Source: Schizochytrium sp. TIO01
Taxonomy: Eukaryota > Protista > Bigyra: Labyrinthulomycetes
Reading direction: 5' to 3'
DNA: 64,000 bases
NCBI GenBank assembly: GCA_004764695.1
Contig: SMSO01000037.1
Span: 4,254,747-4,318,746, forward strand
This document shows positions 2,958 to 19,628 of the stretch, piece by piece. A program made the position numbers and the translations under genes. Positions within the stretch are counted from its first letter, which is position 1. Every line of letters begins with the position of its first letter. The notes under the pieces were generated by a model, which was not told the DNA's origin, did not search any database, and saw nothing but the letters and a program-made list of their open reading frames with translations.

Positions 2958-4097
2958 AATCCAGCCCAACTAAGTTGTTCAACTTGACGTTCCCGTATAT
3001 CCTCTGAATCTTTCTTATTTGCCAAAGGCTCTCTCTCGCGAACCTGCGGAATTTGCACAATGACGGGGTTCTTAGTCTCGTTCATCATCATATAGGTACC
3101 TTCTAGTACCTAGTTTATGCTCATAAGCAGTGCTTATGAGTACGTAGGTGATTACTACGTAATGCTATCGCAACATTTTGAAATCCGCAAACGGAACTAA
3201 AACTTTATAACTCCAGAACTACACCCTAGTGTTTTCTTAGTAAGCAGCAGGGGGTTATCATCAATCGCTGCAACCTTTTTGATAACCTTGTTGATGATTG
3301 GGATAGGCTCTATAAATGATTCATCACGGATGCTATGACCATCTGAAGGATTACTGACATCCCCGAATTACTACTACTTTTACTGCATGCTCCACATCTA
3401 GATAATGTACCTACGCACCTACCACGATATTGCTAATAATTTAGCTTTTTCATTTTTATAACTTATTTCCGAGTCGGCCTACTTTAATTTCTATTTTTTT
3501 TTTTAAATAAATTTTAATATTTTAAACCGGAGACGGACTGGCTGGGAATATACGAATAATAGAGACATCAAAACAGGCTAAATGTGAGGCGGCCCATATA
3601 CTTGGATTTTCCTTGTACTGCATATCCAGAAATAAAACAAGCTGCCCAAGAGTACCAAAGATGCCTGAGACTTTCAGTAAAAACTAGGTTCTAAAAGTCT
3701 GGAATTGTGATAGAAGGAGACTGTTTTGGCTTGCGTGTTTACCCTATTTTGTCGAGTTTTATTTTTTTAATTAAAATTATTTATTAATAATTTTATTTTA
3801 TTTTATAAATGAGTTGCCTCTAAAGATTTTTAAGTAGGTATTAGGTAGGTACCAAAGGTATAGGTAGGTACGAACCTTGCGCATTAAATCAACAAATCAA
3901 CTTCTTCAGGGCTTCAGGGACCTAGGTACTAGATTTTTCAACAGTGCAAAGGTCTGCTAGACTTAGGCACAGACGGAGGGGCAAAAGGGCGTGGGCAAAC
4001 ATACGTTTTCTTCAGCATACTCAAAGTTACAATCGATCGCTTGATTTTAAATTTAAAGTTATTTGCGAGGAAACGAGGAAAGTATTCCTAAAGCATC

Positions 4098-4739
4098 ATG
4101 GGTCATGGCTTGTCAACATTCGGCGACCAGGCTGCAGCCAGCTTTGTTGCCATAGTTCTTGGGTGCGCTGTTATGACTCCCGATCTGTTTGATTTGAAGA
4201 AACAGTTCGCGTTTTATGCCTCGTATCACACTGATCATCATAATCAGCTGGTTCACTTCGCGTGCATCTGGCCAATTTATTGGAGCACCATGGCAATTTT
4301 GCACAAGACTACACCATTTGCAGGTGTCAAAGAGGGTGAAGACCCAACTACGCTGCGCTGTAACTGGGCTACTGTTGCAACAGCAATTTATGCTGGCTAT
4401 TATCTTTTGATGGACCGCTCTGTCGGTGCGGTTGCAGCAGGAATTGCTGTCGGATGCTACTATACTGCAGGCAAGTGGGTAAAGAAAGATCCCCGTAACT
4501 TTAAGCGTGCTATCGGCATTAAAGTTGCTGCATGGATTGCTCAGTTCCTTAGCCACCGTTTTTGCGAGGGCCGAGCACCTGCTCTCTTGGATAACCTTTC
4601 ACAGGCTTTACTCATGGCGCCTCTATTTGTGGTTTTTGAAGGTGCGCAACAGCTCGGATTTCGACCTGAGTTTTTTGCTGAGGTTCAGGACTTAGTAAGC
4701 CAAAACCTTATTGACTTTCGCAAGGCACAACTACAATAG
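4098..4739 (+). CDS. Mpo1-like (DUF962) 2-hydroxy fatty acid dioxygenase, ER membrane protein
   Basis: DLKKQFAFYASYH...NQLVHFACIWPI, WIAQFLSHRFCEGRAPALLDNLSQALLMAPLFVVFE. Confidence 0.88.
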   Translation: MGHGLSTFGDQAAASFVAIVLGCAVMTPDLFDLKKQFAFYASYHTDHHNQLVHFACIWPIYWSTMAILHKTTPFAGVKEGEDPTTLRCNWATVATAIYAGYYLLMDRSVGAVAAGIAVGCYYTAGKWVKKDPRNFKRAIGIKVAAWIAQFLSHRFCEGRAPALLDNLSQALLMAPLFVVFEGAQQLGFRPEFFAEVQDLVSQNLIDFRKAQLQ

Positions 4740-4977: not shown

Positions 4978-6624
4978 TTACTTGTTATTTTCTGATGGTG
5001 TCTCCTGCTTTACCTCTTGATAAGGCCCTCCCTCTGCTTCACTTTCAATTATTTTCTTTGCTTCATCCTGTTCCTTAGTTTCACCATCACCAAAATCTAC
5101 ACCAACTTTCCTGGAGGATTTTCTTCTTTTGTTATTGTCAAGGAAAAAATCCCGTAAAGAACTGGAACTCAATGGCTGGTGAGCTAGCTTTACTTCTGTA
5201 CGTTCTTGGTCTCCCTGCTCGTGCTGCCTCTGCTGCGTACGGCCCTCTCGTTTCTCGGACTCTTCTTGTTCGGTCTCGTGCTCGGTCTCGCGCTCTGTCT
5301 CGTGCTCAGTTTCTTGTTCAGTTTCTTGTTCAGTTTCTTGTTCGTCCTCTGTAATATTTAAACTTCGAGCAGAGTGGTTTGCTTCATTAAGAAACTTGGC
5401 CGTAAGAGACTCCAAGTCTTCCGGCACCACCTCGGAATTGCGTCGACCTTTAGCGAAAGAAGCAATTACCATTGCTTTTACCTGAGCGCGTTTGATCTTT
5501 TGATCTAGCTCATGTCGCTTTTGCTGGGCGATCTTTGAGGCATAGAGAATCGAGCGAGGCTTGAACCATCGGTCTGACATGTGCATTATGTTGTCCATTA
5601 TGGCAGCTGTGTAAGCGCCTAGAGGAAGGTCATTCGGGTCATCATCGAATGGATTCTCCATTTGGCCCGCAAGTTTAGCCAGGCCGTTGAGTACACAGCT
5701 ACACACTGTGCAAATCAGGGCCACTGCAATCGGGGACCACCCTAAACTTAGCAAAGAAAATGGCAACGAGCCGAGAAATAAAAAGATCACAAGATCAAGA
5801 AAGACGCGATGCATATCAGGAATCGGTGTACTTTTAATGCGCAGACAGTTACCAAAACAGTCGTTGAGAAGCTGAATTTTAGGTTCCAGAACAAGGTTCA
5901 CCGTTGATGCATCAATCGTTCCGTCGTTCATCATCATAACCACGGTTCCAGACATGAGATCGAGAATCGCAAGAGGACGATCTTGGCCAGAGTGTTGCAA
6001 AACATATGATAAGTCAGCTTGACTCAAAATAAGCTTCAGCTCGAGCTGATCACACTCCGATTCATCACGAAGACAATTTTTCATTGCAATGGGAAAGGCC
6101 ATAGTGTACATTGCAAACGACATCGACGTTGATTTTTCGTGATTGTATGCCAAAACAGATCGTACCAAGTCACGACTCACAGTTGTAAGCCTACCCCATG
6201 CAGTTCTACCCTCCCACCAGCGTAGCATCCCTTCACGCTGTCGAAAAGCAACCATTAAACCAACGACCCAACCAAGAATATCTACGTAGCCCATAGACCC
6301 AAGTAGTGCAGCGCCTCCGCCAAGCTCAAAAACAGCAGCAAGAGCAATTCCAACATGATATAACGCAAATGCAGCTACTCGCTTTTGTGCAAATAAATGC
6401 AACACACCAGTAGCAGATAACATGAGTGATGGTTTCTGGTCACGAGCTTTCAAAATGCGCCTATCTACGTCAGAAATAGTATGCTTCGCAACGTCAAGTT
6501 CATGTGCGATTTTCACGGTATCGGCTCGATCAAGAATGGCTTGACCCATCGGAGAGACTGCAGAAGAGGCTGTTCGATATCGTTTTGCAGCCCCACGATT
6601 TCTATTATAGTTTGAGGACCGCAT
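4978..6624 (-). CDS. Bestrophin-like / UPF0187 (VCCN/YneE-type) anion channel with an acidic low-complexity C-tail
   Basis: MVAFR...RWWEGRTAWG, CLRIKSTPIP, FLGSLPF and QMENPFDDDPNDLPL motifs; several hydrophobic helices. Confidence 0.85.
   Translation of the reverse strand: MRSSNYNRNRGAAKRYRTASSAVSPMGQAILDRADTVKIAHELDVAKHTISDVDRRILKARDQKPSLMLSATGVLHLFAQKRVAAFALYHVGIALAAVFELGGGAALLGSMGYVDILGWVVGLMVAFRQREGMLRWWEGRTAWGRLTTVSRDLVRSVLAYNHEKSTSMSFAMYTMAFPIAMKNCLRDESECDQLELKLILSQADLSYVLQHSGQDRPLAILDLMSGTVVMMMNDGTIDASTVNLVLEPKIQLLNDCFGNCLRIKSTPIPDMHRVFLDLVIFLFLGSLPFSLLSLGWSPIAVALICTVCSCVLNGLAKLAGQMENPFDDDPNDLPLGAYTAAIMDNIMHMSDRWFKPRSILYASKIAQQKRHELDQKIKRAQVKAMVIASFAKGRRNSEVVPEDLESLTAKFLNEANHSARSLNITEDEQETEQETEQETEHETERETEHETEQEESEKREGRTQQRQHEQGDQERTEVKLAHQPLSSSSLRDFFLDNNKRRKSSRKVGVDFGDGETKEQDEAKKIIESEAEGGPYQEVKQETPSENNK
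5264..5343 (-). repeat. Coding 12-nt tandem repeat (~6.5 units) encoding (E[Q/H/R]ET)n
   Basis: tcagtttcttgt x3 and tcggtctcgtgc variants; protein EQETEQETEQETEHETERETEHETEQEE. Confidence 0.85.
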
Positions 6625-8869: not shown

Positions 8870-11425
8870 CTAATTTGTGGGAGATTTGCCAGCAGTTTTT
8901 TCACAACGATATACGAACGCAGGAGGTAAATTTGCCCATACAATATTGGATCTCTCGACCTTTTCAAATGTCTCATCTAAAAGCGCTTTGAAATTCTGAC
9001 CAGCAGGGAGGACCAAACCTTGGAGGTATGCAAATGTGCAAAATCTCCCACCTGGGCGTAAGGCAGCGTAAACCTGAGAGAGAATTTTTTGTTGAAGCGA
9101 ACGCGGGAAAATGGCCCAGGGCAGACCGCTGATCACTGTATCTGCATGATCGATGCCACGCTCCTTCAGAACAGATACAATACGTTCGGCGGATTCGAGC
9201 AGGAAAGATTCCTGGTTCTCAGGAAACCGATCTTTCAACCGGTCGACAAATTCTTTGGAAAGCTCGAATGCCAGATAGGTGGTGTTTTCAGATTTCCCTA
9301 GATGCTTGATAATCGCTGCAGAGAATGGACCTGTGCCTGGCCCAAGCTCAACAACTACTGCGTTATCTCCAAGATACATCGTATCACACATTGCTTCAGC
9401 TAACTGCTCTGAACTTGGCGCAAGCGCTCCCGTCTCAACGGGATGTTTGACCCAGTTTGCCAAAAACAGGGCCGCTTCGCTTCGGCGAAATTCTACAACC
9501 TTGGTATGGATTGCACGACCAAGTGCTGATGAGTTAGTGCGCACTTGCTGTTTATATACGGCCCGCAGATGGGGTTTCTCAATGACATTGAGGAATGAAA
9601 TCATAATTCCATGGCCAAGAATGGCGACAGCCAATACTTCTGCTGAAGATGCGAGCATAGCAAGCCCATACATCCATAAGTGACCAAGGTAGGTGTCAGG
9701 ATTATTAAGATAGCGATACAAACCATCATACGTAAGCGCAGGTGGCGCACCTTGCTTAAGGCGCGCCGGGGGGAGAAAGAAGTCACCATAGAATGTACCA
9801 AAGTCGCCAAGGACCTGGTAGCATGCTTCATGAGACCACAGTGACACCAATAGCAGAATTGCACCAAAGAGGTACTGGCAGATGATTACAGGGTCGAGGA
9901 ATCGCTCTGGGAACTTGGTAAATCGAAGGGCACACATGATGAAACTGGATGTCTCTAAACCTTGGAATAAAAGATAAATTCGTTTCCAATTTTCAAATGC
10001 ATGGAGCCGCGAGCGGCCAGCAGCGAGGTAGTGTCGAGTCCACGTTTTATCTCGCTCCTGACGAACAAGAATATACCCTTTTGCCATGGCAGACAAAACA
10101 CGAACACCAATAGCAAGCAAAATTAAGGGCATTTCTCCTTCAAAAGGCCCTCCCGGGAAAGAGCCTACCCAAATAGTCGAGATAAAGAGCAAGATAGCTA
10201 AGGTGAGCAAAACGTCGGCGGCTCGGTAAACATCAAAATGCCGCAAGAGATAAATGTAGGAAACACCTACTGAGGTAACTTCATGGAGTAAACCCATACC
10301 TTCTTTAACAGCCTCTGTCTCGACATGAAAAATAGGCTGTTCGTTTCCATAGAGCTCATCTACATGGGGTGCTTCAACAAACACGAGGAAGATCATTTGG
10401 GAAAAGTGGAAACCCATAGCACACGCAAGGACGGGATAACTTCGGGAGAGGAGTGCACACCCATACGTCCATCCATAGCCAACAGTGTACATTGGATGCG
10501 GGAATAGACCAAAGACTCCGTTGTACGTGAGTTCGGTATTTCCAGTACGCATGAAAAAGAAATCAAACCAAAACCATGCCGGGTCGCCTGCATGGGTCAT
10601 GGCGGACATCTTGCTACCTAAACTGACCACAATAAGGAAGACACCAATCACATCGATGACAGGGTTAAGGATTGGCCAATCAAACTCAGACCGTCCAAGA
10701 CTTCCATACTGGATTGCCATGAGGGTAAACGCCACGACATCGTTGCTCTCAACCAGGATAACAAGGCTTCGGAATGCAACCCAAGCTGCGAATGAGGGTG
10801 GGAGACTGCTATCGTTGAGAACTTCTCGTTCTTCGGGCATGGTCTGTCGCAAAACCCAGCTCCAGAATGCGTTTTCTGTCGTGAATGGCATTCGCCGAAG
10901 CCTTTGAATCCACTCTGTGAGCAAGCGTTGCTTGCTTTGTTTGTGGAGAAGCCAGCCCAGACCGCAGTTGTAGCCGAGGCGCCACAGGATTGCAATAATT
11001 AATGTGATACCAGGGAGCTGAGGCCAGAAGAAAGCGCAAACAATGGACACGAGAATACCGGCATAGGCGACGAGGGTTGCAAAGGTATACCATTTGGTAA
11101 ATAAACTCTGGAAAAGGCTGTGCGTCTTTGGCACGTCAAAGACTCGTTGGCCGTCAAGAGTGATGCCGACATCTTGCTGCGAGGCAAACCGTTTTCGTGC
11201 TGCAATTCGCTTTGCACGAGGCATGCTGGACTCTTCGGAGCTGGACTCGATCGTGCTCAGTTGGTCTCGCCTCGCGAATTCACCCGATTTCTCTGTGAGA
11301 TGGCCGTCCGATTTCTCACAGTAGTCCGTATCTTCTTCTTGCGCAGAAAACTCTGCCATCGAGGATTCCCCAGTCGAGAAAAAGCTCCCTCCTGTGGTCC
11401 CCTCTCCGGCACCGCGCCGCCGCAT
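8870..11425 (-). CDS. Phosphatidylethanolamine N-methyltransferase, Cho2/PEM1-type with two PEMT modules, fused to a C-terminal PmtA/COG3963-type class I SAM phospholipid methyltransferase
   Basis: Cho2 motifs WRLGYNCGLGWLLHKQS, WFWFDFFF..TYNGVFGLFPHPMYTVGY, VEAPHVDELYG, FYGDFF..TYDGLYRYLNNP and IEKPHLRAVY. C-terminal ~200 aa: FLANWVKHPVETGALAPSSEQLAEAM, VVELGPGTG, VISGLPW, GGRFCTFAY, VWANLPPAFVYR. Confidence 0.9.
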   Translation of the reverse strand: MRRRGAGEGTTGGSFFSTGESSMAEFSAQEEDTDYCEKSDGHLTEKSGEFARRDQLSTIESSSEESSMPRAKRIAARKRFASQQDVGITLDGQRVFDVPKTHSLFQSLFTKWYTFATLVAYAGILVSIVCAFFWPQLPGITLIIAILWRLGYNCGLGWLLHKQSKQRLLTEWIQRLRRMPFTTENAFWSWVLRQTMPEEREVLNDSSLPPSFAAWVAFRSLVILVESNDVVAFTLMAIQYGSLGRSEFDWPILNPVIDVIGVFLIVVSLGSKMSAMTHAGDPAWFWFDFFFMRTGNTELTYNGVFGLFPHPMYTVGYGWTYGCALLSRSYPVLACAMGFHFSQMIFLVFVEAPHVDELYGNEQPIFHVETEAVKEGMGLLHEVTSVGVSYIYLLRHFDVYRAADVLLTLAILLFISTIWVGSFPGGPFEGEMPLILLAIGVRVLSAMAKGYILVRQERDKTWTRHYLAAGRSRLHAFENWKRIYLLFQGLETSSFIMCALRFTKFPERFLDPVIICQYLFGAILLLVSLWSHEACYQVLGDFGTFYGDFFLPPARLKQGAPPALTYDGLYRYLNNPDTYLGHLWMYGLAMLASSAEVLAVAILGHGIMISFLNVIEKPHLRAVYKQQVRTNSSALGRAIHTKVVEFRRSEAALFLANWVKHPVETGALAPSSEQLAEAMCDTMYLGDNAVVVELGPGTGPFSAAIIKHLGKSENTTYLAFELSKEFVDRLKDRFPENQESFLLESAERIVSVLKERGIDHADTVISGLPWAIFPRSLQQKILSQVYAALRPGGRFCTFAYLQGLVLPAGQNFKALLDETFEKVERSNIVWANLPPAFVYRCEKTAGKSPTN

Positions 11426-14102: not shown

Positions 14103-17100
14103 ATGGACAGTGGTGTTGATGTCCGAACTAGCCTGCGCAAGGTCGGCTGCGCGCTGGGAGCGGCTGAGAGAAGTGCCGAAAAGCGGTTCTACTCGCATCT
14201 ATTGACGACCAGAAGACAAACGCCACCTCGCAGGGACCAACCTAACTCAGCACACAAGCACCAAGAAGACCAAAGGGAACAGCAGGAGCCAACTCAGCAC
14301 CCCTCGCAAAACTATGAGCGGTTGAAACAAATAGATCAACAAACACAAAAGGAACAAAACCTGACACTGCACACGGAGCATTCACAGAATGTAGGGTCGC
14401 GTAAAATGGAGAACAACCTGTGCCCCGATGGCGAGGATAAACAGGCGCCCCGCGCTGATTTTGACATGCAGAGAAAAAAAATCCATGGAGTTCTCAGGGC
14501 ATTCGAAATAAACATGCGACGCCAAGATTATGAGCGTGCTGCAGATACTCTCGATGCGTGCGTCAGGTATTTAGAAAATACATATTCTCGTCAATCTGGA
14601 CATGATATATTAGTTCTACTCACATCGCTTGCTCGAGAACGGAAAAGTGATGAAGACAATACATGCTCAGAACCTTCTCTCTCGAATATCTCTGATCAGC
14701 TACTGGCAGCGAGCATGGCAGCAGCTGGCAGAAATAAGCTTGCCATAGCACATGACTTCACTCGAAGCCGCGCCCCCGAAGCTAAGGATACACTCCTTGC
14801 GCCCTACTGGCCAGCTCAATCAGTGTCAGGTACACTTCTTAGTACCACATTGGCACCAGCACCAAGTCGTCTCCTTGAAAATTCTGCTGAAGGTCCAGCA
14901 GCACCTCTACGAGTCAATGTACAGACAGTGCCAAAAGTACGCTCACGATTTCCCCCAGCGGTAGATGGCAAGGAAAACTGGGCAAACCCAGCCCTCTTAG
15001 GCCCAACATTGTTCTCTCAAGAAATTCAGAACAAAAATAAAATCACACATTCGATCTCGCCTGACTTTGCTGCTTTAGAACATGCAACCCATGAGTCGAA
15101 GGGAAATGGCTTTGCACATAACGAGGACCGGCAGGATAATCTGCTAGGAGCGCTTGTTTCCAAGGCTAAACTTCCCAAGTCCTTGGACATAATTTTGTCT
15201 TTGCCTCGCCTCGATACAGAATATGATGGGTTTGCACCTGACCCACTAGGCTCTAAGATTGCCGAATCTAGACAGCTCAGGGCTTTGGACGAGGTGCTTC
15301 GCTTTCATCACTCAAGCGAGCATACCTTGGCGCCGAAACAGATAAAACCACCAACATCAAGTAGGAGAGTAGATTCTGAAGACCTTTGTGAAGTTGAGTG
15401 GCTCGAAAAGTCTGATGATGTATGGCTTCGCGCCGTCAACTCCAAACCAGAGCAAGGCGTCCTTCTTGGTTGGGAGGAAGAAATACCAAGCAGCTTTATA
15501 GCGTCCCAGCCACAGTCAGACGCCGAGAAGGCTTTGCAATATAACTCGCACGCTGTTCTATCTTCAGAGCGTGGGGACAGGTGGTTTGAATACCTGATAC
15601 AGAAAAGTGGGTGTTTTGAGCAGACACGTGTAGTTCCTACTATCTCAGAAGTCTCGTTACGTCGAGATATAATGTATGCTCTTCTGGGAATACCAAGCAG
15701 CTCATTTGTTCTCTCTGCAGACCTTATGCTGCACCCTTGCGAATCAAGGCTCACAGCAACTACAAGCAGGAGCATTCGCTCTGTTCTTGAACGTATTGCA
15801 AAATACGGTAATCTTTACCTCTCACTCACAGGACTGTGCTACTCAAGTACGCTTTTAGCAGGTGTTGAGATTGCTGATGTCATTGCAGAGCGTATTGATG
15901 TTCATCTTTTGGCCCATCAGCGTCGGGTGGGAATGATTCTTCGAGATGAGGTGTTTGCACCTTCTGAATCGTCTCTGATTAACCTTACCTATCGCATTGA
16001 AGGGGAATTGGCGCCAACATTGCAACGCCTAGATTTTCTTTTCTCTAACGCAGCCCAACTTGAGGATACAATCTGCGTACTAGAGCACTTTTATGAATCC
16101 ACTTTGAACACAGGGTCTTCAATTCGCTCTGTAGAACGTGATATGCTATGGTCTTGCCTAGAGCGGGTCATCCATGTGCTCACTAGCTGGGCATTTAGTG
16201 GGTCTGATGCGCTCGAGCACTTTGAAGGAAGCTTTTTTCATCACACAGGTGAGAACAGTGACGGAAGCTTGACACATGAACAGCTTCTTAAAGCTATCGC
16301 AGACTTTTCTTTGCCTTACGCGCTACGAGTGCCCCGATTTTTCAAGTCATCACTACGTGGAGTTTACTCTGTTGAAGTAGCGCACAGGGCGGCTTTATGT
16401 GGGTCCTTACTCCGGTTGCTTCGTGATATGCCTGATTGTGCACCGTTTTTTGCGCTTTGCACTCGTAAACAAGACCAGGCCAAATTTCAGGCCAGTGCAT
16501 TGCGTGCTGGGCGCGAGTATGGTACTGTTGTTTTGCAAGAAACTATGATGGCTGCAAGTTCGCGTAAGCGTCACCTAATAGCTGAGATGGAGCAACTCTG
16601 TAGCCTGAAGGAGGCCGAGCGCTTAGCATATGAGAAGCAGCAGCAGCTCGATGCGTGGAACACATTGGAAGCATCACGCGCAGCAGCAGAAGCTGTCAAC
16701 GCTCGTTTTGTTGCACAAAGTTTAGAAGAGCAGGAGCGTTTGGATGCTCAACGCAAAGCACGACTTGAAGAATTTCGAGTTGCTGCAGAAGAAGCCCGCG
16801 CTGCAAAAGTTCGAGCTCGACTCGAACGTCAACGGCTTGAGCGATTAGAACAACCAGTGGACATCACTTCTACCATTACTGAAGACCAACGGCGAGAGGC
16901 AGAGGAATACTTGCTTGAGCAATACCGTCAACTTGAGCAGGAGCAACTTGCTAAGGGCGTTGAGCTTGACGCAAGAATTCTCCAAGCAAAGCAAGAGCTT
17001 GACACAAACCTTCTAGCTTTACAGCAACGACCGATTGGTCAGCTGAGTACATCGATTGCAATTCAACAGCCACCTGGAGGTAGCTCAAGTGCTGACGCTA

Positions 17101-19628
17101 TTATTTATTCCAACAACTCTACAACCAGCTACCTTAGCCGCCCAAGCATTCGCATAGTCGGATCTCCTTCTTATGAGTCTCAAACATTAGGCAACGACAT
17201 AGCAGCCCCGAGCTCGGTACGTATAGTTGGGCCTTCTTCGGGTGGAGATGGCCACGATATGCGTGCTGCTCTGGGGCACGAAGGTTTTGCAGATAGCCCA
17301 AATCAATCGCAGCAGCGTTCGTCTGTGCGCATCGTTGAGGATTCAAAACATAACATGCGATCAGAAGACGTAGGAGACGAGCAGCAAAAGCCATCAATTC
17401 GGGTTCTGCCTAACTCCGGTGGTGGTGAAGGATCAGATGCAAGGAACGCAATAATTGGCATGTCTACTGAAGGAGTTTCGTTTCAAACACCTAGTGGCAC
17501 TCTCCAGACTATTGAAGCCGTCGAGGAACCATTCGCCGATGCAGCTGCAAAGCCATCAGAGGCGCGTGTAGCCTGTCTGATGGACGCAAGTACCCAACCA
17601 GACTCGGTTTTACAAGAGGAATCAGAGTTTAATACCAACGCCATGAGCAAGAATAGCGTCTTCTCAGGGTCTTCGCTTGCTGTCGACAAGACCGAGACTG
17701 CAAGAAGCTCTGGCCCAAGTCCGGAGACAATGCTTGAGTTTGCTACGGATTACCAAGAGTCACCAACGGTAAATGCAGAGTCTGGAGCTGAGTCATTGAA
17801 ACTATCAGTGGATCCTATCGACTTATGTAGGAATCGACATAGCCACGAGGCAAAGGGTATTGAGTGTACTCTTCCCGAGGATGTTGATGATCCAGAAGTG
17901 TCTCTGTCTACCGCATGTATTTATTCAGAATCTGAAGACAATCACTCACTTTCCTTTCACAGACCTGCGCTGCATGCTCGCATCCAGCAAGAGCCAGGTG
18001 GTACAAGTTCTCTACATCTCGGATCATCAGATGAGATTGGATCGCAGGAAATTCAGAGACATAGTGTTCGAGTGACACAAGCTCCGGGAGGTGCTCAATC
18101 AAGTACCAATGCTGTGCCTGAGCGTCTTCACGTACGCGTACAGCAAGAGCCAGGAGGTTCGAGCTCACTGAATGCAGGGCAGTGGAAAAATGAAGCTGCG
18201 AATTCCCCCAGGCACAAACCTAAATCGTCTGTAAAGATTCAACAGAGCCCCGGAGGTGCTTCTACGTTTGCGTTTGATGCTGGTCCAGAACGTGATCGTT
18301 CCTCCGTTCATGTGACTCAGCCAGCAGGTGGGCGCAGCACAATTGCAAACCTTTTAGAAGCTAGAGGAAACTCTTTGCCGCTCAAAGGTACTGAAGCTCG
18401 ACTCATGGGTATCGAAGCTGTACATCGTATAAGGGAAGCCATGATCAAAGCTACGCCGCTCCGCTATGGAGATGCAATGTCTTCTGATCTACAAGAATGC
18501 AGACAGGCGCCAGGAGGTGTAGCAAGCAAGACGATTTCAGATTCACTGGAAGATCTGGGCTGTGATGATTCTTCTTGTGGGGCACTCGATGCTGCAATTG
18601 AGCTGGCACTTGTTGAACCTCTCTTGCAACAATGTGATTTGGTTGAATCTGCATTTATAGCTGTAGTTGTGCGCCAGTCTAATCTGCTTGAAGCTTTGAG
18701 TGGGATTCGTAGCTCCATCCTCATGGCTCAAGGGGAGCTTTTCAATGGAGTAGTTGAGCGTCTGCATGATATGCGGCTTCGGCAGGTTGACTTTTCTGCG
18801 GGAAAAGGTCGGGTTCTGCAAGAAGTCCTAGATTCTGAGCTTGATTCGCTTGACCTTTGGTCTCGAAATTTCGCCCCTCATTTCAAATACAAAACCAGCC
18901 TTACTGGGGATGGGAAACTCCCTGTTGAAGGAGACTTCTCAGATTTCGAATTTATTGAAGCAGACTATGAGCTTGCATGGCCTCTCTCATTTATTGTGCG
19001 GAAATCTGACAGTGCGGCTTACCCTCGGATTCACCGTTTCCTACTTCGGCTAAAGTATGCTGGGGCACTTGTTCGACAGGTTTGGAAACGCCTTTGCGAA
19101 ACCAAGGGCTATCGGCGTCTATCAATATTCACTTGGCTATCTATCCGCTGGCAACAAGTTCGCAATCTGTTGTCCAATTTGGAAGACTACCTGATGACAC
19201 AGCTGTTATCCGAGCATTGGACAGCTATGGAACGTTCCTATCGCGCACCGTGCTCATCATTTAAGCATCCAAATGAACTTCAAGATGTGCACCATAGGTT
19301 TATCTCATCTGCATTACGAACCTGCTTCCTAGATGATTCCGCGGTTTCCAAGGTCCTTTATGAATGCATAAGTCGAACAATGCAGCGAACAGACACGCTC
19401 GCAAAATACAGTCTTAAACTGCTTGATCAGATTACAGATACACCGGGTAGTGCGTCTATGCATTGGGAAGTACCAAAGGAGCTACATGCGGCATGGAATG
19501 AATTTCAAAAGACACAAACTTTTTTATTGAGAACAGTTCAATCATACTCACGAAACGCCATTTCTCCCGATAGCGCTGCTCAGCGAATTCTCATGCATCT
19601 GAACTTTAACAACTTTTTCCTTGCCTGA
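14103..19628 (+). CDS. TUBGCP6: Gamma-tubulin complex component, GCP6-like (GRIP1, long coiled-coil/repeat insertion, GRIP2)
   Basis: SEVSLRRDIMYALLGIPSSSF (GRIP1 start); LLMAQGE-like ILMAQGELF, DYELAWPLSFIV...YPRIHRFLLRLK, LQDVHHRFISSALRTCFL and terminal LNFNNFF (GRIP2). The 1841-aa length and big central insertion point to GCP6. Confidence 0.85.
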   Translation: MDSGVDVRTSLRKVGCALGAAERSAEKRFYSHLLTTRRQTPPRRDQPNSAHKHQEDQREQQEPTQHPSQNYERLKQIDQQTQKEQNLTLHTEHSQNVGSRKMENNLCPDGEDKQAPRADFDMQRKKIHGVLRAFEINMRRQDYERAADTLDACVRYLENTYSRQSGHDILVLLTSLARERKSDEDNTCSEPSLSNISDQLLAASMAAAGRNKLAIAHDFTRSRAPEAKDTLLAPYWPAQSVSGTLLSTTLAPAPSRLLENSAEGPAAPLRVNVQTVPKVRSRFPPAVDGKENWANPALLGPTLFSQEIQNKNKITHSISPDFAALEHATHESKGNGFAHNEDRQDNLLGALVSKAKLPKSLDIILSLPRLDTEYDGFAPDPLGSKIAESRQLRALDEVLRFHHSSEHTLAPKQIKPPTSSRRVDSEDLCEVEWLEKSDDVWLRAVNSKPEQGVLLGWEEEIPSSFIASQPQSDAEKALQYNSHAVLSSERGDRWFEYLIQKSGCFEQTRVVPTISEVSLRRDIMYALLGIPSSSFVLSADLMLHPCESRLTATTSRSIRSVLERIAKYGNLYLSLTGLCYSSTLLAGVEIADVIAERIDVHLLAHQRRVGMILRDEVFAPSESSLINLTYRIEGELAPTLQRLDFLFSNAAQLEDTICVLEHFYESTLNTGSSIRSVERDMLWSCLERVIHVLTSWAFSGSDALEHFEGSFFHHTGENSDGSLTHEQLLKAIADFSLPYALRVPRFFKSSLRGVYSVEVAHRAALCGSLLRLLRDMPDCAPFFALCTRKQDQAKFQASALRAGREYGTVVLQETMMAASSRKRHLIAEMEQLCSLKEAERLAYEKQQQLDAWNTLEASRAAAEAVNARFVAQSLEEQERLDAQRKARLEEFRVAAEEARAAKVRARLERQRLERLEQPVDITSTITEDQRREAEEYLLEQYRQLEQEQLAKGVELDARILQAKQELDTNLLALQQRPIGQLSTSIAIQQPPGGSSSADAIIYSNNSTTSYLSRPSIRIVGSPSYESQTLGNDIAAPSSVRIVGPSSGGDGHDMRAALGHEGFADSPNQSQQRSSVRIVEDSKHNMRSEDVGDEQQKPSIRVLPNSGGGEGSDARNAIIGMSTEGVSFQTPSGTLQTIEAVEEPFADAAAKPSEARVACLMDASTQPDSVLQEESEFNTNAMSKNSVFSGSSLAVDKTETARSSGPSPETMLEFATDYQESPTVNAESGAESLKLSVDPIDLCRNRHSHEAKGIECTLPEDVDDPEVSLSTACIYSESEDNHSLSFHRPALHARIQQEPGGTSSLHLGSSDEIGSQEIQRHSVRVTQAPGGAQSSTNAVPERLHVRVQQEPGGSSSLNAGQWKNEAANSPRHKPKSSVKIQQSPGGASTFAFDAGPERDRSSVHVTQPAGGRSTIANLLEARGNSLPLKGTEARLMGIEAVHRIREAMIKATPLRYGDAMSSDLQECRQAPGGVASKTISDSLEDLGCDDSSCGALDAAIELALVEPLLQQCDLVESAFIAVVVRQSNLLEALSGIRSSILMAQGELFNGVVERLHDMRLRQVDFSAGKGRVLQEVLDSELDSLDLWSRNFAPHFKYKTSLTGDGKLPVEGDFSDFEFIEADYELAWPLSFIVRKSDSAAYPRIHRFLLRLKYAGALVRQVWKRLCETKGYRRLSIFTWLSIRWQQVRNLLSNLEDYLMTQLLSEHWTAMERSYRAPCSSFKHPNELQDVHHRFISSALRTCFLDDSAVSKVLYECISRTMQRTDTLAKYSLKLLDQITDTPGSASMHWEVPKELHAAWNEFQKTQTFLLRTVQSYSRNAISPDSAAQRILMHLNFNNFFLA

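Follow-up and report, generated by a model that had tools for sequence, protein, structure and literature searches.

A thraustochytrid Cho2-type phosphatidylethanolamine methyltransferase carrying a second methyltransferase domain of bacterial origin

We analyzed a 64,000-nucleotide stretch of the Schizochytrium sp. TIO01 genome (assembly GCA_004764695.1, contig SMSO01000037.1, positions 4,254,747 to 4,318,746; hereafter the window). A single gene on its reverse strand encodes a protein of 851 amino acids (aa) in which a phosphatidylethanolamine (PE) N-methyltransferase of the Cho2 type is followed by a soluble class I methyltransferase domain (hereafter the C-domain; Table 1). We found that this fusion is real, expressed, conserved, and specific to the thraustochytrid lineage. 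What is new is the combination of the domains, the bacterial origin of the C-domain, and the restriction of the fusion to thraustochytrids; both domains come from known enzyme superfamilies. On balance, we favor the view that the C-domain acts, tethered to Cho2, as a second N-methyltransferase of lipid head groups with a PE-type substrate, and that it reinforces the first methylation step or steps without replacing Opi3.

Thraustochytrids (Aurantiochytrium, Schizochytrium, Hondaea) are an industrial source of docosahexaenoic acid (DHA), and DHA passes into storage oil through phosphatidylcholine (PC). Published work on thraustochytrids assumes the cytidine diphosphate (CDP)-choline and lysophosphatidylcholine (LPC) routes. 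In one Aurantiochytrium strain, no PEMT gene was identified (PMC10523756). The locus described here shows that the methylation route is encoded, by the Cho2 fusion together with two PLMT-like genes, and that the first enzyme of this route carries an extra, putative catalyst of bacterial origin. An earlier reading of the stretch, made from its letters alone (the sequence-only reading), knew of no description of such an architecture. Our full-text literature search on thraustochytrids and PE methylation enzymes likewise returned none, and in the databases these fusion proteins carry automatic names and domain lists.

The fusion gene and its conservation

The sequence-only reading had proposed that one 851-aa open reading frame (ORF) joins a Cho2-type enzyme to a soluble methyltransferase. 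This was borne out by the ORF list, by Pfam, and by NCBIfam. Pfam detected PF04191 in two stretches (143 bits in total against a cut-off of 25, E 3.8e-42) and, after these PEMT modules, a class I methyltransferase domain at aa ~690-797. The domain boundaries that we found lie a few tens of bases from those first proposed, and the four motifs that had been described as intact (GALAPSS, ELGPGTG, SGLP, and NLPPA) were all located where they had been placed.

An identical 851-aa protein (P0001) is present in an MMETSP transcriptome, where it is labeled 'type:complete', and in JGI. The junction is therefore transcribed; the transcript support for it consists of this identical MMETSP ORF. Proteins of Hondaea fermentalgiana (854 aa, named 'phosphatidylethanolamine N-methyltransferase') and Mucochytrium quahogii (908-909 aa, MMETSP0098) share this architecture, and so do several more thraustochytrid-like proteins from JGI, MMETSP, and Logan (640-1001 aa). 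The fusion is thus conserved in related genera. All fusion proteins keep the junction as ...VEKPHxRxVYKxQHVR..STALGRAI..KV.DI.R.E.A.FLANWVKHPxETGALAPSS..., which departs from the tails of non-fusion Cho2 proteins past aa ~640. Within the junction, a conserved post-membrane Cho2 helix (aa 634-648) is followed by the helix AALFLANWVKHP (aa 650-660). Between species, the C-domain is 66-84% identical, versus 37-72% for the Cho2 part.

We also considered contamination and an assembly artefact. The gene sits on a chromosome-scale contig of a 64-Mb, 37-contig eukaryotic assembly, and the GC content, overall and at third codon positions (GC3), is equal in both halves of the gene. Both explanations were rejected because the ORF is continuous, its neighbors are eukaryotic, GC and GC3 do not differ between the halves, and the same fusion occurs in the transcriptomes of several species.

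The first ~630 aa aligned with fungal and kinetoplastid Cho2 proteins at 97-100% query coverage (E 1e-65 to 1e-75). Against the Cho2 proteins from Penicillium, Aspergillus, Leishmania, and Spongospora, among others, identity was 28-39% across 98-100% of this length. Hydropathy and an AlphaFold2 (AF2) model both indicated ~8-10 hydrophobic helices. Like other Cho2 proteins, the window protein has both sets of module motifs (WxWGDFFF...PHPMYTVGY in the first module and FYGDFF...NNPD...VExPH in the second), bar a Gly-to-Phe change in WxWGDFFF. The two PF04191 modules and the full-length homology to Cho2 thus identify this half as a predicted ordinary Cho2-type PE N-methyltransferase of the endoplasmic reticulum (ER) membrane, in agreement with the sequence-only reading. 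The segment aa 1 to ~85 showed no alignment with other Cho2 proteins. The closest non-fusion Cho2 was P0194. In Cho2 of fungi, kinetoplastids, Rhizaria, red algae, and unnamed protists, unlike in the thraustochytrid fusion, the C-terminus is an unrelated, charged tail (34-217 aa) that contains no domain.

The Cho2 part also shows some variation of its own. Among the aligned Cho2 proteins, the motif W[YF]WGDFFF reads WFWFDFFF (aa 284-291) only in the window protein and in Hondaea, and the other fusions keep the Gly. Common to all fusion proteins is a two-residue insertion (RTG/RMG) directly after the module-1 motif. Four fusions (P0003, P0004, P0005, and P0009) have a low-complexity insertion of 40-85 aa in module 2, between FYGDFF and Y.GIYRY.NNP. 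This insertion is absent from the window protein (where the site is at aa ~556-560, positions ~9746-9760), from Hondaea, and from non-fusion Cho2 proteins.

Family and origin of the C-terminal domain

Three approaches agreed on the family of the C-domain. With NCBIfam, the best match of aa 650-842 was OlsG (NF041658, 90-94 bits, almost full length), and the second was Agrobacterium-type PmtA (NF045881; 51.3 bits with the whole protein, 55.6 bits with the domain alone). Both scores are below the equivalog cut-offs (94 versus 350 bits for OlsG, 56 versus 250 for PmtA). A family profile searched against the PDB matched Agrobacterium tumefaciens PmtA (AtPmtA, 9KO3) over the whole domain (E 2.9e-26, 95.7 bits). 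A Foldseek search of the AF2 model against the PDB also returned 9KO3 as the best match (target-normalized template modeling score 0.78, identity ~22%). In the full-length AF2 model, the mean pLDDT was 83, with values above 92 in the C-domain, and the pTM was 0.56. The C-domain is thus non-homologous to Cho2 and belongs to the superfamily of OlsG and S-type PmtA, as the sequence-only reading had it.

A KsgA-like rRNA methyltransferase was rejected as an identity for the C-domain. The KsgA/Erm models of NCBIfam gave only 12-25 bits; TIGR00755 gave 21-25 bits against a cut-off of 171 and covered the half that binds S-adenosylmethionine (SAM) only. PF00398 scored 15 bits on the protein against a cut-off of 24. 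In the PDB, KsgA proteins matched the family profile with 40-43 bits, and only over profile positions ~24-123. The grouping with KsgA that the sequence-only reading had named as its own possible undoing was not realized: the KsgA scores are weak next to those of OlsG and PmtA.

The C-domain shares with S-type PmtA (NF045881; 9KO3) the ExGxGxG SAM motif, the GAxxP(S/T)S loop, the catalytic Tyr, the N(I/L)PPA motif, and the Rossmann fold. S-type PmtA is a free peripheral protein, whereas the C-domain is covalently tethered to a membrane enzyme. The helix at aa 650-660 fits the family consensus FLxxFxxxP and has a moderate hydrophobic moment; it is internal and follows the Cho2 membrane domain. 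Its counterpart in S-type Pmts is the last part of the N-terminal helix region that binds the membrane, a region that is reduced here. The fusion offers a natural case for asking whether a tether can take the place of the amphipathic helix by which bacterial Pmts bind membranes. OlsG of Singulisphaera acidiphila represents the top-scoring curated family, and it belongs to the bacterial superphylum in which the nearest relatives of the C-domain are found. It differs in that the C-domain scores far under the 350 bits of the OlsG model and is part of a eukaryotic gene, with Mpo1-like, bestrophin, and gamma-tubulin complex protein (GCP) genes as neighbors.

We searched 1.84 billion representative proteins with the C-domain and obtained 4390 matches, of which the best 150 were inspected. 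Among these 150, the long proteins were further copies of the fusion only, and the rest were stand-alone proteins of ~190 aa with 35-49% identity. Relatives with a name came from Pirellula, Victivallaceae, and Lentisphaeria (40-49% identity across ~190 aa). We scanned one genome for each species with a pattern based on the NLPPA-type signature and an alignment of nine sequences, which gave 591 confirmed bacterial loci. The best 80 were almost all from Planctomycetota (Pirellulaceae, among them Rhodopirellula baltica and Rubripirellula), Verrucomicrobiales/Akkermansiaceae, and Lentisphaerota. The family in these bacteria of the Planctomycetes-Verrucomicrobia-Chlamydiae (PVC) superphylum consists of ~190-aa proteins with the signature WxN[LFV]PPA[FIV][VIA]Y. 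In the Schizochytrium genome, the family profile matched the C-domain with 250.6 bits as the sole copy.

All of the 50 close bacterial relatives matched both the OlsG and the PmtA models, and none of the 50 did so at equivalog level (best OlsG E 1e-38). Because these relatives match both models and none comes near either cut-off, the C-domain is best classified, from sequence, as part of a third, uncharacterized branch of the OlsG/S-type PmtA superfamily. True OlsG reached its cut-off in none of 251 sampled Planctomycetota genomes. The best OlsG match there (L088, 159 bits) lies on a branch of great length, and its alignment around the groove is poor. Partner genes of the OlsH/OlsI type were not seen in the bacterial loci examined.

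We rooted a maximum-likelihood tree of 108 rows on distant paralogues from Rhodopirellula. In this tree, the eleven eukaryotic domains formed one clade (SH-aLRT 100) that lies several nodes inside the bacterial family. A tree of 64 rows gave the same monophyly and the same nesting, with another, weakly supported sister group. Metagenomic relatives were found near the eukaryotic clade (P0034, P0048, P0065, and P0066). Given this single eukaryotic clade inside the bacterial family, the best reading of the trees is that the domain was acquired in a single ancient transfer from bacteria to thraustochytrids and that the fusion to Cho2 came afterwards or coincided with it. The bacterial distribution and the nested clade thus both speak for the horizontal acquisition suggested by the sequence-only reading. 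The locus would clearly exemplify how, in the core membrane-lipid metabolism of a eukaryote, a horizontally transferred domain can become fused to a resident enzyme.

Proposed role of the C-terminal domain

In AtPmtA, the SAM motif is E/DxGxGxG, the head-group loop is Ala32-Thr36, and the groove is formed by Ala128, Ile159, and Tyr161, the last of which is important for catalysis (PMC12139422). Whether Ile or Phe occupies position 159 sets the number of methyl groups added, and reciprocal mutants shift the products (PMC12139422). The Ile enzymes AtPmtA, Sinorhizobium meliloti PmtA, and BdPmtX3 lead to dimethyl-PE (DMPE) or PC, and the Phe enzymes BdPmtA, BdPmtX4, and Xanthomonas PmtA stop mainly at monomethyl-PE (MMPE; PMC12139422). 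In the register of our alignment, Phe798 of the fusion protein corresponds to Ile159 of AtPmtA and Phe161 of BdPmtA, and Tyr800 to the catalytic Tyr161 of AtPmtA and Tyr163 of BdPmtA. The groove of the C-domain therefore reads Gly/Phe/Tyr, as in Bradyrhizobium diazoefficiens PmtA, versus Ala/Ile/Tyr in AtPmtA. Across 51 sequences of the family, Tyr is found at the Tyr800 position in 50 and Phe at the Phe798 position in 37.

The motifs of the C-domain are almost invariant. All eleven fusion-type proteins that we compared have identical GALAPSS, ELGPGTG, and SGLPW motifs, with a conservative change to GAIAPSS in the fragment P0010 as the one exception. Wherever a fusion protein covers the GRFCTFAY region, that sequence is identical too, and NLPPA is near-invariant (N[LF]PPA). 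Because the motifs are invariant and the C-domain is more conserved than the Cho2 part, its sequence has the pattern expected of an active enzyme and not of a decaying appendage.

In the mechanism that we propose, a methyltransferase of the PVC-bacterial branch would have been acquired once and fused behind the last Cho2 helix. Anchored by the Cho2 body, the Rossmann domain would sit on the cytosolic side of the ER membrane, near the pool of PE used by Cho2. The published topology of PEMT and the need for SAM are the basis for this orientation. The C-domain would then methylate the amine of PE-type head groups as a second, non-homologous catalyst in the PE methylation route. It would most likely reinforce the first, committing methylation step or steps, and the PLMT-like enzymes would complete the route to PC. 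We infer the topology, the substrate, and the methylation step; reinforcement of the first step is suggested by the Gly/Phe/Tyr 'narrow' groove and by the two retained PLMT/Opi3-like genes.

Besides one ICMT, the Schizochytrium genome contains two further single-module genes of the PEMT family, both PLMT/Opi3-like. Transcription of the first, which encodes 172 aa, is seen in MMETSP0958, and this gene has an orthologue in Hondaea (GBG34323.1, named phosphatidyl-N-methylethanolamine N-methyltransferase). The second encodes 318 aa, with a long extension at the N-terminus, and shares 33% identity with the first across the catalytic region. The sequence-only reading had suggested that the PmtA-like domain replaces Opi3. 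This was not supported: PLMT-like genes are kept, also in the fusion-bearing Hondaea, and the Phe-type groove is that of enzymes of the first methylation. The same division of labor is known from the multiple Pmts of B. diazoefficiens, in which PmtA performs the first step and other Pmts the later ones, and from yeast Cho2 and Opi3. In contrast to both systems, the fusion has two non-homologous candidate catalysts of the first step on one polypeptide, an arrangement for which we found no precedent in the literature searched.

Several points weigh against a reinforced first step. The substrate of the C-domain is extrapolated across a wide miss of both equivalog cut-offs, and the function of the PVC/thraustochytrid branch is predicted from sequence. 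The Phe/Ile rule comes from S-type Pmts that are just ~22-30% identical to the C-domain, and by score the nearer family is OlsG, which adds three methyl groups and in Escherichia coli can convert PE to PC (PMC12971839). To have the same step catalyzed twice on a single chain would be redundant and is hard to explain. The bacterial gene neighborhoods are mostly uninformative, and the arrangement of the two domains is not confidently predicted, as the pTM of the full-length model indicates. A complex prediction of Cho2 aa 85-628 with C-domain aa 645-851 gave an ipSAE of 0.00, which speaks neither for nor against docking or channeling. Taken together, we still hold it somewhat probable that the C-domain is an active, tethered PE-type N-methyltransferase that reinforces the first step and leaves Opi3 in place.

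A bolder alternative, which we regard as possible but doubtful, is that the C-domain does something beyond the canonical eukaryotic pathway. It would either complete the conversion of PE to PC on the Cho2 polypeptide, where two unrelated catalytic folds would act one after the other with a hand-over of MMPE at the ER surface, or make an N-methylated lipid specific to thraustochytrids. If true, either would provide the first functional example of a eukaryotic enzyme of phospholipid synthesis into which a lipid N-methyltransferase, acquired horizontally from bacteria, has been built.

In the model of the sequence-only reading, the C-domain would convert MMPE to DMPE and PC, so that the whole route would lie on one polypeptide, with Opi3 replaced and intermediates possibly channeled. 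The trimethylating, PC-forming activity of OlsG, the best-scoring family of the C-domain, fits such an enzyme, as does the frequent fusion of enzymes that catalyze consecutive steps, and no other part of the protein is as conserved as the C-domain. However, the two PLMT/Opi3-like genes are retained, one of them expressed and conserved in Hondaea, and the specificity position holds Phe, as in the Pmts that yield mainly MMPE. The AF2 model gives no support for a defined interface between the domains. We therefore consider a complete route on one chain unlikely.

Alternatively, the C-domain could methylate another acceptor (lyso-PE, phosphatidylserine, ceramide phosphoethanolamine, an amino-acid lipid, or a non-lipid), with Cho2 as a mere anchor. 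The sequence-only reading, too, had offered a different N-methylated lipid as its alternative. Its place on a separate branch below both equivalog cut-offs leaves room for this; OlsG shows that the superfamily can switch lipid acceptors, and the PVC relatives are uncharacterized. Yet the GA(L/I)xP(S/T)S loop, the groove residues, and the catalytic Tyr align with AtPmtA, and the partner is a PE methyltransferase, which argues for a related substrate. Ornithine lipids, moreover, are stated to be absent from eukaryotes (PMC12493201, PMC12971839), and the KsgA/Erm-type matches are weak (21-25 bits). A different acceptor thus appears quite improbable.

That the C-domain has ceased to be an enzyme, and tunes Cho2 as a structural appendage or as a regulator that binds SAM or S-adenosylhomocysteine, would dispose of the apparent redundancy of two catalysts and recalls the membrane remodeling by AtPmtA that is independent of catalysis (PMC5312082), but it is very hard to reconcile with the SAM motif and acceptor-site residues (GALAPSS, SGLPW, and TFAY) kept across fusion proteins that are 66-88% identical overall.

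Bacterial gene contexts, feature coordinates, and neighboring genes

The gene neighborhoods of the bacterial family are not conserved; MetX/MetW, an aminotransferase, tetratricopeptide repeat (TPR) proteins, TsaD, and anthranilate synthase were among the neighbors. In 3 of the 80 PVC loci, an R-type Pmt-like gene directly adjoins the family member. All three are planctomycete loci in which the adjoining gene encodes a UbiE-like methyltransferase (L020:2267-2992 on the plus strand; L018 ~3600-4363 and L028 ~1100-1787 on the minus strand). The best NCBIfam match of this neighbor was NF045882 (Legionella/R-type Pmt, 125 bits, below the cut-off). These loci may encode a two-enzyme PC pathway in Pirellulales and Thermoguttaceae. 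The adjacency lends weak support to a phospholipid role of the bacterial family, and it recalls the multi-Pmt systems of Bradyrhizobium. The fusion points to a large family in PVC bacteria, present in hundreds of genomes, that probably methylates the head groups of membrane lipids.

A second, distant set of paralogues was seen in Rhodopirellula (L089, G001:C364:50500-51900; L090, G002:C48:13400-14900), with an apparent I/L-A-Y where the family has F-A-Y. 'Wide' and 'narrow' grooves may thus coexist in one bacterium, the paralogue alignment being uncertain by one residue. The same methyltransferase family also occurs behind DHH/DHHA1 phosphoesterase domains in two proteins, P0011 (551 aa, from an ENA metagenome) and P0012. 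This second kind of fusion is 41% identical to the C-domain of the window, with SGLPW, TFAY, and NVPPA intact. One locus labeled as a Nitrosopumilus sp. metagenome-assembled genome (L014, CAXQOB010000118.1) groups tightly with Rubripirellula; a binning error is more likely than an archaeal gene.

The features of the fusion protein and the two PLMT-like genes are listed in Table 1.

Table 1. Coordinates of the fusion gene, its domains and motifs (positions in the window), and of the two PLMT-like genes (positions in their own loci)
Feature	Position	Strand	Basis or remark
Fusion protein coding sequence, 851 aa + stop (stop 8870-8872)	8870..11425	-	Uninterrupted ATG-to-stop ORF
N-terminal low-complexity region, predicted disordered, aa 1 to ~85	11171..11425	-	AF2 pLDDT 35-53 (aa 1-70)
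PEMT module 1, aa 259-361	10343..10651	-	PF04191, 70.5 bits, six-frame search of own genome
Module 1 motif WFWFDFFF	10553-10576	-	Alignment
Module 1 motif PHPMYTVGY	10475-10501	-	Alignment
PEMT module 2, aa 517-626	9548..9877	-	PF04191, 86.4 bits, six-frame search of own genome
Module 2 motif FYGDFF	9776-9793	-	Alignment
Module 2 motif NNPD	9695-9706	-	Alignment
Module 2 motif VIEKPH	9569-9586	-	Alignment
Junction, aa 627-665	9431..9547	-	Conserved sequence and helices in AF2 model
C-terminal class I (Rossmann) SAM methyltransferase domain, aa 650-843	8897..9478	-	NCBIfam, family profile, PDB profile, Foldseek
GALAPSS, aa 666-672	9410..9430	-	Equals AtPmtA G31-S37 (GAIVPTS), lining of head-group site
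ELGPGTG, aa 693-699	9329..9349	-	SAM-binding motif E/DxGxGxG, equals AtPmtA 58-64
SGLPW, aa 766-770	9116..9130	-	Gly767 equals AtPmtA Ala128 / BdPmtA Gly130, groove wall
TFAY with Phe798 (specificity position) and Tyr800 (catalytic position)	9026..9037	-	Register from 9KO3 alignment
NLPPA, aa 832-836	8918..8932	-	Aligned with AtPmtA NIPPA; family signature
PLMT-like gene 1, 172 aa	L003:1270-1788 = G000:C36 ~2616166-2616684	+	PLMT clusters of plants, animals, fungi; atlas score 0.95
PLMT-like gene 2, 318 aa	L005:1492-2448, G000:C24	-	Same family result as gene 1

The genes around the fusion have no evident functional link to the methyltransferase. On one side lie a gene of the Mpo1-like 2-hydroxy fatty acid dioxygenase family (4098-4739, plus strand) and a bestrophin-type channel gene (4978-6624, minus strand). 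On the other side, a very long gene encodes a gamma-tubulin complex component with both the N- and C-terminal GCP domains (14103-19628, plus strand).

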